NCBI GenBank assembly: GCA_964270895.1
Contig: OZ185435.1
Direction: 5' to 3' (one strand)
Origin: Podarcis filfolensis
Taxonomy: Eukaryota
Length of the DNA: 64,000 bases
The position numbers and the translations under genes are program-made. Shown here one piece after another: positions 3,141 to 50,251 of the stretch (positions within the stretch are counted from its first letter, which is position 1; the number at the start of each line of letters is the position of its first letter). The notes beneath the pieces are model-generated. The model ran no database searches and was not told the origin of the DNA. It was given only the letters and a program-made list of their open reading frames with translations.

Positions 3141-6006
3141 GCTTTAGTTGAATGCTATGTTCAAATGTACCAACCTATTTTTTAATATTTTATAATTCAG
3201 GTTTTTTTGTTCAGACATTGTTTTATGAAGAAAAACTTCATACACCTGCCATTTAATATGCTCTTTTATCTAGTTTTTAAATTCTAAAACTGGTGTATTA
3301 TATGGATTAAATAAAGAAGAAATGGAATTTTACCTGCTCATCATAAAACTACGTTTAACTTAAGGAAAGGATCTTCCAGCAAGAGTGCAGATTATGTAGG
3401 TATCCAATAAAAAAACCCATACAAAACAAAGTTTCAACAAGGCCTTTTAAGGGGGGCTACATCATCTACAGAAGACTCAAACCATCCAATTGACCATACG
3501 TAGAATGATGAAGCAGTCTATATATAGGTGGTGGCCAGGAGAAATCGATGATTCCATTTCTGTCCCCTTGACAAGTCAGACCTGTGTGTTCACTCTGCCC
3601 GTAATTACAAAAGTTGCAAAAACTGTTGTGTGAAAAATATGGTTTTTGACAATTGGGTTTTCTTAGTGCAAAACATGGAGGTTTTAGCACTCTAGTGTCT
3701 TGTTGCTCCATGCAAAAAAATGACTGCTACTCTTAAAGTTAAAACCATAGATAATAATCTCATTACCTAAAATTGAGAAGGATTTTAGGATTTTGTCTCA
3801 ATCTGTGCTTACTGAAAGACAAATCCATTTTCCTGCAGTTGTTAAAACTACTAAATGTTGCATACAAGCCAGATGAGATCCCTCACCTTTTGATGGTGGC
3901 AGACATTCTACTTGGTCGTGTGCCCCCCCCAAAAAAATCTTCCAAGTTTACTCTCAAAGTAGAGAACTTTCTTTATAGGAATTTCACTGAGCCATGAACA
4001 GAGTGGCCAATTTGACAGTACTGTATAGTGTCAAATTGACCCATTTAATATCTTAAATAACCCAAAGTTTGTCCACTAATATGTGACTCTTGACACAACA
4101 CACATCATGTAACCATGCCATGGGGTGGAATTTCCTTCCTTTAGAAGCTGGACATAGTCCAAGCCCCAGCATCTCCCAGGGCAGCCAAAAGAGCTTCCTT
4201 GGCTTTGAGCAGAGGGGGCTAATCCGTTTTGGCTGGTGGGCTGCATTCACTCCTGACCAACCCTTTGAAGATAGTGTGTCAATAGTAGGTGCGGCCACCC
4301 CCGAGTCTTGCATCAACACAAAAAGGCTGACAGTCCCCGCTCCTCAGCTGGTCCACGTCTCTTGTGCTTTTCTCGGTTTAATGCAGAACCTCAGCAAATC
4401 CTGAAGGTCGGAGCACCCTCAGCAACTCTGGATTTTGCATTGAGGGTCATGCAGTACTGAAGTCTATGAAAATTGGGGGCCTTGCCTTACACAAATGGAA
4501 AGCAATTTCTTCCGGCATAAAACCACCACTGTATGCAGCTCTGCGCTCCGAATGATCATGATTCAGCTTGACAGTATGTCAGTACACTGTGCTCTTCAGG
4601 ACTACAGTCCATTGTGTGTGGTTGCATCACTACTTGGTGCTACAATTCTGTAGTTAAATGCTGAGACAGAAGAACTAAATCATTCGAAATAGTTACACCT
4701 GAAGCCAAGGGTAGCAGCAGGGTGGGCCAGCATCCCACAAACTGACCAATGAACCAAGGTGAAGTATGTGAGCCAATTTGGGGGGGGGGGGAGTCAAAAT
4801 CCTAGCTTGCTTTCTTCCTGAACTAATGAAGAGTCAATTCTTTCGTGGTACTCTGAATCAAGGCCAGCACCTAGTAATTGGTCCTATAGACCTGAGGGGA
4901 TTTATACTTTGAACAGCAGCCACCTATGCTGCATGGTGTACAGCAGGGAGTTTCAGAAGTAGTTAATGACACCTTATGAGGGTCAGTTCTTCAAGCAACA
5001 GTAAATAATGCCACTGTAATACCAAGCCCGTAACATTTGTTCATGCATCTCTTGGATTGTCCTAGTGAGGTAGAAGACCAGGACATGAAGACTTGAAAGC
5101 AATACATGAACTTTACAGTAGGGTTTTCTGTATCTAGTAGAAACTACATTTTCTCTATACACTTGGTTTGAAATTTGATTAAACCGATCAGCTTTTGTAA
5201 CAAAAAGCCAGTTTTCATGTTGCAGGGCATGACCACAGCTATGCATCCTTTTAGTTGGCTGTTGCATACCTGCATTAAAACTTTAGTGCAGCAATCCTCA
5301 AATATTTTTGATGTTGCTATATAGATGAGGACCAAATTAGGTGTAACAGCAAAGATGCAAACCGATTTACTGGGTGAGGGAAGCAGAGAGCATGTTGCCA
5401 AGGGGTAAAGGTCTATTATCCAGAGAGAAAGCTGGCATTAATCATGAAAAAATAATGGCGCTTTGGGATGTGGTCTCCTTAAATAATACATTTCTCTTGC
5501 TACATTATGCCTAACCTCATGCAACTGTCACTCATAAAAAATTAAAGAGAAAAATGTTGCTATGTAGCTAAGTTTATTTTCTGTGTTTGATAACCCTCGA
5601 GGCAGTAACATATATCAGATCGCTCTCTCTAGGCATAATGGTTAGCTGCAAGCGGGAAAGAAATCGAGGCTGCAGTCCATGGCACTTTTACTAGGGAAGA
5701 TTGAACTCAGGTTTACTTCTAAGTCTTAAACATGCTTAGAATTCCACAGCATATATTAGAATGCTACAACATTGCAAGGGACCACAAGGCTATCCTAGCC
5801 AACCCCTTTCCCTAGACATATTCTACTATGGAGCAAACTCGACACAAATTAAATTCTGCAGTCCAAGCTGCACTCGGTTGCATGCAGAAAACAGTCTTAT
5901 TCAATTTTTGAAATAAAAAAGGGAAAGCCACCCCTACCCCCATTGTCTCTTATTAATGGAATGGCATGTCTGCATTGTTTTGGGGATATCTACCCTTTAT
6001 ACCAAC

Positions 6007-47068: not shown

Positions 47069-47177
47069 TGAGTCTTAAGGAAAGAGCATTGGAAGAAGGA
47101 AGAAACCATTCATGACAATCCTTGGAAGTTGTCTTGAAAAGAGTTCACTGTAATTGAGAATTTGCTGTCGGTTCTAG

Positions 47178-47351
<174 letters not shown>

Positions 47352-47368
47352 TAACTCAGAGCAGATAG

Positions 47369-47539
<171 letters not shown>

Positions 47540-48076
47540 TGAAAGTCATCTGTTGGGCAGCTTTTCAGTGCATTCCAATATGCTGCGTGCAACAGGCACA
47601 TTTTGCTCCATGCTTTCGAATATGCCCTTTACGGCTCCCCAAAAAAATCAGTGCATTTTGGCTTGTCAGCTTAATTCTTCTGGGTAATACTTTGATCAAT
47701 AATCAGGTTCGGGCTCTGATTGATTAGAAGCACAAGTAGTGCAGCTTTCCAGAATGCCAGATCATGTTGCTAGATAATCCACATTGTATATGGATGTTGC
47801 TGTCTTTAAATAAAAGGCTTTGAGTACAAAAGCATTCTTTTAAAAACAAAACCAAGAAGTTCATCTGCCATGATAAAAAGTACCCAGTCTGGCTATGCCT
47901 TTGACAAAGGCTTTGCAGTTGCTTATCATAGTTTTGTGTGTTTTGAAATGGTGTTTCTGAAGGCTGAGAATCTGGGAAACATCCAGGTCCTTTTCCCTTG
48001 GCTTTAAAAAAACAGTGGGAGGTGTGCCTGGTAAATTGTGCCTTTCGTTTTTTAAATCAAGGTTGATTTTTGCTGA

Positions 48077-48388
<312 letters not shown>

Positions 48389-48693
48389 TGAATAATTGGC
48401 AGGTTTACAGTGGCTGCTGCAGGGAACAGAAATAAATGGTTCACGAAGACTCCTGCAACACTTATTGCATGTTGCAGATAAAAGGCATAAATTTTTAGGG
48501 CTCAATTTCTGCTTCAAATTATCAAATCTCATCTTGATTCAAGGAGAACATTCTCAGAAAGAAACTCTCCATTCAGTGGATTCCATTGTGGCCAAATCTC
48601 AGTCTTGGAACCAAATTTCTTTCTCCTATTCCCAGCAGCAGCCTTCAGTGTTTGTTTTTGCATGCTGAACCCTTTTTTCCCTCCCCTTAATAG

Positions 48694-48889
48694 CTGTGAG
48701 CTCTATAAAGAAGCAGCACCTTATTGAAGTAAGAGCTATGGGCAACCCACCTGCGGCAGTAAAACTGGCTTTAGAATCCATCTGTCTCCTGTTGGGTGAG
48801 GAGACGAATGACTGGAAAAAGATCAGGCCAGTTATTCTGAAAGATAATTTCATCACCAGCATTGTCAACTTTAATATTGAAGACATGAG
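48694..48889 (+). CDS. DYNC1H1: DYNC1H1 exon 52b, tandem paralogous MTBD exon (putative mutually exclusive alternative)
   Basis: ccttttttccctccccttaatag|(A)[64 protein letters not shown](S)|gtattt, 196 nt, same phases as 52a, no stops or indels. Usage itself is inferred. Confidence 0.85.
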
Positions 48890-48966
48890 GTATTTGTGTT
48901 CTATAGCTTTGCTTACCAAGGTGATGGGATAACTTGCAGGCTTGGCAATTGCATGCTGGATGGTAA

Positions 48967-49215
<249 letters not shown>

Positions 49216-49334
49216 TGAAGGTGGTTTCCTGCCTCTTGCTGTTTAGCTCAGCGGGTCACTGACAATCCCACAGTGGCTTTAAAAATAACAAAGCTTTAAA
49301 ACCAGAACTGTTTAAGCGTCCCAGAACTGAGTGA

Positions 49335-49586
<252 letters not shown>

Positions 49587-50251
49587 TAGCCATGAGTTTA
49601 TCCTTGTTGCGCTTCCTTAGAAATGTGTCTGTGGTTTCCCACTTTTATCACGTCTCCTTAAGGGCTTACATTATAGCTGCAACCTTGAGTGGTCTAGCTG
49701 AGGGAAGCAAAAAGATAATAGAATGTGTGCTTCTAAGCATTCTACACAATTTCCTTGTTAGTGCTCTTTGTTCAGGCATGAATTTAAAATCCAAAGTTCA
49801 TTTGTATATTGAAGAGAGTTTACTTATTTTGCTTCTATATTTAATACCAATAGCATAGTTAGGTAATCTATAAATTTGTCCACGTTAATAAATGCAGTAT
49901 AATTTATATAGTTTTAGAAGCTTAATTTAAAAATGTGTGTATCACTACTTCTGTGTCTTCTGTAATAATTCCTACAGCTGCCTAGTGCTGCATATATTCT
50001 AGGTTTTAAGGCTGCCTTTTAAGCCAAACTTGATAAGCAGACAATTTTGCTATGCTTCTTTGTTGATGCTAGCTGCATTTTCTAATAAAAAATAAAGTTG
50101 TGGTTATGCTCCCCTTTCCTCAGCCTCCTAGGTATTTGAAATGTGTGTTTCGTAATAGGATGCTGAAAACCTGGCCCTGTATCTGGTGCAATTACAAATT
50201 TCTCCGTGTTTTCAAAGGCAGGTAGTAATCTTCAATCCAGTTTTGGTTTAA

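Follow-up and report, generated by a model that had tools for sequence, protein, structure and literature searches.

Cytoplasmic dynein-1 is usually described as having one heavy chain for all minus-end transport, with its diversity coming from accessory chains and adaptors. In arthropod myosin, the classical case, tandem homologous exons swap an element of the motor domain and tune mechanochemistry, and the resulting isoforms are abundant, are expressed in a tissue-specific manner and show measured kinetic differences. The pair of DYNC1H1 exons that we describe here, 52a and 52b, shares with arthropod muscle myosin heavy chain the arrangement of tandem homologous exons in a motor protein, and is known here from sequence. 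The mutually exclusive exons of arthropod muscle myosin are cited in work on the dynein-1 heavy chain of Schistosoma mansoni, SmDHC1 (Pillmann et al. 2011, PMC3228551), which likewise has equal-length homologous tandem exons with split codons and for which mutual exclusivity was inferred from sequence. Schistosoma mansoni belongs to a different phylum from that of 52b, and the duplication there is presumably independent. Apart from this mutually exclusive exon of Schistosoma DHC1, we found no description in the literature of an alternative or duplicated exon for the microtubule-binding domain (MTBD) in vertebrate DYNC1H1; annotation pipelines do run into 52b, as a gene model from Coryphaenoides rupestris (below) makes clear, and isoform records may exist.

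At the protein level, the closest described system is the canonical dynein-1 MTBD (mouse/human DYNC1H1; PDB 3ERR, 6RZB, 7Z8F, 9DGQ), with which 52b shares residues 3296-3359, helices H1-H4 and the tubulin-contact residues K3300, K3301, R3308, K3336 and R3339, and from which it differs in the loss of K3297 and P3349, the gain of E3331 and K3337, and the lineage-local Pro3340 and Lys3344. Cryo-EM of the mouse MTBD identified tubulin contacts at K3299 and R3337 in mouse numbering, equivalent to human K3301 and R3339 (PMC6629372), which upholds the premise of the original prediction that basic residues in H1 and H3 contact tubulin. Its second premise, that K3336 and R3344 are mutated in human disease, is borne out as well: K3336N and R3344Q, together with R3384Q, map to the surface that faces the microtubule and compromise processivity (10.1101/092791). 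In molecular dynamics simulations, mouse R3342 (human R3344) is the main contact of the neighbouring tubulin E-hook (PMC6125590), and a 2025 study proposed that the charge of H3 sets the tubulin-tail preference of dynein-2 (PMC12706001).

The + strand of the window, that is, of the whole 64-kb stretch of DNA analysed here, carries the vertebrate cytoplasmic dynein-1 heavy-chain gene DYNC1H1, as read from open frames and RNA junctions. The features relevant to the exon pair are as follows.

47414 to 47534, + strand: exon 51, the end of stalk CC1, with RNA junctions 47297 to 47414 and 47534 to 48192 in four RNA runs and a frame that ends ...EPAVIEAQN.
48192 to 48387, + strand: exon 52a, 196 nt, the canonical MTBD exon, encoding H1-H4 and the start of H5, with AG and GT flanks.
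48388 to 48693, + strand: the 306-nt intron between 52a and 52b, with RNA cover at pre-mRNA level only, in RNA contigs.
48694 to 48889, + strand: exon 52b, likewise 196 nt, a paralogue of 52a and the alternative MTBD exon, with codons at 48696-48887.
49035 to 49152, + strand: exon 53, which completes H5 and adds H6 of the MTBD and is shared by both forms, with junctions 48387 to 49035 and 49152 to 49365.

The two copies align without gaps within the exons, and their flanking introns are unrelated. Each has its own acceptor, a pyrimidine tract with AG, and each is followed by GT, the donor of 52b in the window being GAG followed by gtat; 52a and 52b are thus tandem homologous exons of equal length and phase, with their own splice sites, 306 nt apart. 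Since 196 leaves a remainder of 1 on division by 3, inclusion of both exons or of neither breaks the reading frame, and therefore only one copy is usable if the frame is to be maintained. Whichever copy precedes exon 53, the split codon AG/T at that junction encodes Ser.

For the comparison of the peptides, 48194-48385 (52a) and 48696-48887 (52b) were translated, giving 64 residues each. The 52a peptide is 100% identical to human DYNC1H1 3296-3359 (4646-residue chains such as 5nug_A and 7z8f) and also to mouse MTBD constructs, and this mismatch-free alignment makes the human-equivalent numbering exact. The 52b peptide aligns to the same human residues with 72% identity, 28% of residues being different; a phmmer comparison with human DYNC1H1 chains gave E=2.5e-25 over 3297-3358, and 52b is homologous to the dynein heavy chain MTBD of cytoplasmic dynein-1 type (Pfam PF12777 region). 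A column-by-column comparison reproduced exactly the 18 changes from 52a to 52b that had been listed earlier: four before residue 3330 (K3297S, V3305I, S3309A and A3311G) and 14 after it (S3331E, T3333N, Q3337K, S3340P, I3341V, M3343L, R3344K, E3345D, P3349T, T3350S, S3355N, A3356I, E3358D and I3359M). The excess after residue 3330 is likewise confirmed, at 14/29 columns compared with 4/35 before it (Fisher p=0.0018), and so, by translation, is the presence of K3300, K3301, R3308, K3336 and R3339 in both exons. H2 and its flanks (3312-3330) do not differ between 52a and 52b.

Is 52b a coding exon under selection? Many short genomic ORFs matched 52b in a word search, and they sorted cleanly into 52a, 52b and single-copy types. 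The same tandem is found in six other divergent genomes (L001, L003, L006, L009, L010 and L011), with 52b lying 150-400 nt downstream of 52a, and in 7/7 genomes, the window and these six, both copies are 196 nt with AG and GT flanks; a further contig with both copies, L012, comes from the teleost Coryphaenoides rupestris (GCA_002895965.2, PIJE02022797.1). These orthologues were detected through open reading frames, a route by which broken copies would escape, and 52a-type contigs 100% identical to human were left out. Nei-Gojobori dN/dS is 0.03-0.17 among 52b orthologues, at dS values ranging from 0.25 to saturation, and 0-0.06 among 52a. For three phylogenetically independent pairs of 52b, neutral evolution would make 78% of the changes nonsynonymous, and the observed figure is 16/50 (p=8e-12). 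Maximum-likelihood analysis places the seven a-exons in a clade of their own (100/97) and the seven b-exons in a second (98/96). It follows that the exon was duplicated before teleosts and the lineage of the window diverged, and that no homogenisation between the copies is taking place. With synonymous sites saturated and the protein conserved, selection on a translated product is the favoured reading, and taken together these comparisons support the view that 52b is a genuine, selected coding exon.

Several individual copies deserve mention in their own right. The 52a of the closest of the recovered relatives (L001:1333-1524 and L002:1231-1422) carries T3350I, N3353T and E3357G, and its 52b is intact; the same changed 52a sequence occurs in two runs (L001 and L002), while the other recovered 52a copies are identical or nearly identical to human. 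A 52b-type copy at L013:1001-1399 (P0127) has one extra codon, with three Glu rather than two before T3332, as well as C3325S; its upstream intron resembles that of the window, and its length still fits the reading phase. P0253, a contig protein, is a 298-aa genomic ORF that contains two diverged tandem copies of the MTBD exon of a non-vertebrate-type dynein-1, which points to this exon having been duplicated independently in a further lineage.

We next turn to what the 18 substitutions mean, for which we compiled a column table from 11 distinct 52a-type, 23 distinct 52b-type and 42 distinct single-copy sequences, the last taken as non-vertebrate and being more varied than the other two types. 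One alternative to altered binding holds that 52b is used, while its substitutions reflect drift at tolerant positions under lower expression, in which case the two MTBDs would not differ in function, and splicing or expression would be what has preserved the pair; we regard this as possible, if unlikely. Several observations fit it. First of all, the 18 differing columns are more variable among single-copy dynein-1 sequences than the others (1.24 vs 0.44 bits of entropy; Mann-Whitney p=2.8e-5), and the excess of changes after residue 3330 therefore largely mirrors the tolerance map of the domain. Second, 15 of the 18 changes have BLOSUM62 scores of 0 or more, and all contact residues are retained: across 52b-type sequences, K3300 is found in 13/13, K or R at 3301 in 13/13, R or K at 3308 in 13/13, K or R at 3336 in 23/23 and R3339 in 23/23. 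Third, when the species pairs are matched, dN is 5-10 times as high in 52b as in 52a. Finally, two of the most conspicuous changes are not conserved among 52b copies: Pro3340 is present in 3/23, most copies having Q (teleosts) and another group T, and Lys3344 in 2/23, with R in the remaining copies; V3305I and A3311G are likewise lineage-specific.

Drift at tolerant positions, on the other hand, accounts poorly for the changes that have been held. Around 12 of them define the 52b type across lineages, at saturated synonymous divergence: K3297S, S3309A, S3331E, Q3337K, S3340Q/P/T, I3341V, M3343I/L/V, E3345D, P3349S/T, T3350S/N, A3356S/I/P and I3359M/L. Residue 3337 is K in 22/23 52b copies and R in the remaining one (1/23), and K3337 occurs in 0/42 single-copy sequences. 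The fixed set also reaches near-invariant columns, since S3350 and S3297 of 52b replace a T found in 41/42 single-copy sequences and a near-invariant K, respectively. Furthermore, when the comparison is confined to variable columns, differences remain overrepresented in the C-terminal half (12/17 vs 4/14, p=0.03), a weaker excess. At 3345, 3349, 3355 and 3358 the direction of change is a different one: the 52b state there is the commonest single-copy state (D3345, S/T3349, N3355 and D3358), and it is therefore 52a that is derived at these positions.

How these changes are placed in the structure bears on the claim that they cluster in the tubulin-facing H3. By element, H3 carries three (Q3337K, S3340P and I3341V), loops eight, H1 two, H4 two, H5 three and H2 none. 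The excess after residue 3330 thus stands, while only 3/18 changes lie in H3 itself and the rest in loops, H1, H4 and H5; to speak of a cluster in H3 overstates the pattern, which is mostly background variability. Of the three features that had been highlighted, Q3337K is universal in 52b, with Pro3340 and Lys3344 local to this lineage.

AlphaFold models were made of the 64-residue fragment of each exon rather than of the whole MTBD, and reached pLDDT values of 79.7 (52b) and 82.5 (52a) with near-identical helices. By Foldseek, the 52b model superposes on the microtubule-bound mouse/human MTBD (6rzb_C, 7z8f, 9dgq) with a TM score of 0.79 and an rmsd of 1.9 A. Helices in the 52b model are H1 at 3301-3309, H2 at 3315-3327, H3 at 3335-3342, H4 at 3347-3352 and H5 from 3356; H1 in the 52a model ends at 3308, one residue shorter. 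AlphaFold responds poorly to point changes, and the finding of the same fold is therefore weak evidence about the proline in H3. Placed on a helical wheel, a geometry that does not use coordinates, 3337, 3340, 3343 and 3344 share an exposed face with K3336 and R3339, and 3335, 3338, 3341 and 3342 face the core. The net charge of segment 3331-3345 is +1 in 52a and in 52b, because E3331 offsets K3337, and a more positive H3 in 52b is thereby ruled out; the whole 52b exon is one unit less positive than 52a because K3297 is lost. Dynein-2 offers a comparison (PMC12706001). The two cases share the idea that preference for microtubules and tubulin tails shifts according to whether a basic residue of H3 is present or absent beside K3336. 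Dynein-2, however, is encoded by a gene of its own and its MTBD surface is neutral, whereas 52b keeps K3336 and adds K3337 and E3331, leaving the net local charge unchanged.

To assess how 52b is spliced, RNA was mapped on 47150-49650, using two bulk RNA-seq runs and two contig sets from organism B, a near relative with which 73% of sampled words are shared. The labelling of the contig sets X2 and X7 as RNA is a guess, junctions were listed from a threshold of 3 reads, and the tissues are unspecified. In the two bulk runs, the 51-52a junction has 19 and 26 reads and the 52a-53 junction 15 and 13, and no 51-52b or 52b-53 junction is present in either at 3 reads or more. Run X23 has two reads on 52b with its flanking introns uncovered, roughly 7% of the depth of 52a at n=2; in run X24, cover of 52b is no higher than that of its introns. 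The X2/X7 contigs contain one unspliced piece, 48358-48994, that begins at the end of 52a, takes in 52b and stops shortly before exon 53, at a depth 2-6% of that of spliced mRNA, so that the 52a-53 interval is detectably retained or slowly spliced. In the RNA of organism B, 52a is thus dominant and 52b is at most a few percent, a rare isoform there.

Protein searches agree with this picture in kind. The run index has no RNA holder of 52b on record, and no spliced 52b protein fragment was found in word searches (the second of which reached 118-376 aa) or in an exhaustive representative search, the scope of these being fragments, as clustering at 90% or 50% would merge full-length isoforms. Every 52b-type protein match is either a genomic ORF that continues into intron sequence (...MRY...) or comes from a gene model built on genomic DNA. 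One candidate for a transcript joining 52a and 52b, P0121 (215 aa), is ruled out as evidence of expression: it is a gene model from NCBI, placed on a genomic contig of 2.5 kb from Coryphaenoides rupestris, and its 52b part starts at an internal acceptor. On the contig L012 of that species, the NCBI model CRUP_030649 (gene 71-1633) strings together exons 50, 51, 52a and a 52b shortened at an internal acceptor, giving a duplicated half-MTBD, an annotation artefact that the exon pair has caused.

The splice signals themselves differ between the copies. The 52a donor is CAG followed by gtga in 7/7 genomes (window 48388-48395), and the 52b donor is GAG or AAG followed by gtat or gtac, again in 7/7 (window 48890-48897); the latter fits the consensus less well, which is what a regulated exon would be expected to show. 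In 4/7 genomes (the window, L006, L009 and L011) the RBFOX-type motif TGCATG is found 35-86 nt ahead of 52b; it is absent in L001, L003 and L010. In the window, it occurs at 48466-48471 (79 nt after 52a), at 48659-48664 (35 nt before 52b) and at 48950-48955 (61 nt after 52b).

The scarcity of 52b in RNA raises the question of whether it is translated at all. It might instead act as a frame-shifting 'poison' exon that, spliced together with 52a, would lower heavy-chain output via nonsense-mediated decay, or as a conserved intronic splicing element; we consider this improbable. Inclusion of both copies would indeed shift the frame, 196 nt not being a multiple of 3, a near absence from steady-state mRNA is expected of targets of nonsense-mediated decay, and the 52b donor is the weaker of the two in all 7 genomes. 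Poison exons and RNA elements, however, are conserved at the nucleotide level. In 52b it is the protein that has been conserved, across saturated synonymous divergence (dN/dS 0.03-0.17), and exact length, phase and MTBD-compatible residues have been kept. That 52b is a decaying duplicate (a pseudo-exon) or an assembly artefact without function is very improbable, since, although 52a alone explains essentially all junction reads and an ORF-based orthologue search is blind to broken copies, its frame and splice sites are intact in independent assemblies of at least 7 genomes, it is under strong purifying selection, and the separate a and b clades exclude recent duplication or ongoing gene conversion. 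We reject both the poison-exon and the pseudo-exon readings on dN/dS.

The reading that we favour, and consider reasonably probable, is that 52b is an anciently diverged paralogue of the DYNC1H1 exon for MTBD helices H1-H4, kept as an alternative coding exon with a competent binding surface, used as a minor isoform, and carrying changes on the H3 face that are candidates for a modest shift in binding. According to this proposal, the exon was duplicated anciently and the second copy would encode a fully competent predicted microtubule-binding surface, with H2 and the known tubulin-contact residues unchanged and the fold the same. Q3337K and the change at 3340 would sit on the exposed face of H3 beside K3336, R3339 and R3344, and would be the strongest candidates for modestly altering the interaction with microtubules or tubulin tails; the other changes are, on the comparisons above, mostly conservative and at tolerant positions. 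The simulation and dynein-2 results (PMC6125590, PMC12706001) make a shift in tubulin-tail interaction a reasonable hypothesis. Given its several-fold higher rate of evolution compared with 52a and its rare splicing in the sampled tissues, we read 52b as a minor or cell-type-restricted isoform; its translation in one cell type or another, and whatever effect it may have on affinity, are things that we infer. Overall, the earlier interpretation of the substitutions is partly supported, and a retuned affinity in 52b is a plausible hypothesis.

What would such an exon mean for the motor? An alternative MTBD exon kept by selection since before teleosts and the lineage of the window diverged would let the heavy-chain gene itself vary the motor-track interface, in the same MTBD region that carries human cortical-malformation mutations. 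The conserved signature of 52b, consisting of K3297S, S3331E, Q3337K, residue 3340, P3349S/T and T3350S, points to the residues of interest; the lineage-specific Pro3340 and Lys3344 are not the starting place, and 52b is rare in ordinary tissue RNA. More speculatively, and we hold this as a tentative possibility, teleosts, the lineage of the window and perhaps more vertebrates may have a second dynein-1 motor in particular cell types, in which the H3 and H3-H4 face of the MTBD is reshaped (K3337, 3340, loss of K3297 and P3349) and tubulin C-terminal tails or their modifications are read differently. If true, such a second motor would overturn the picture of a single invariant dynein-1 heavy chain that is diversified only through its adaptors.
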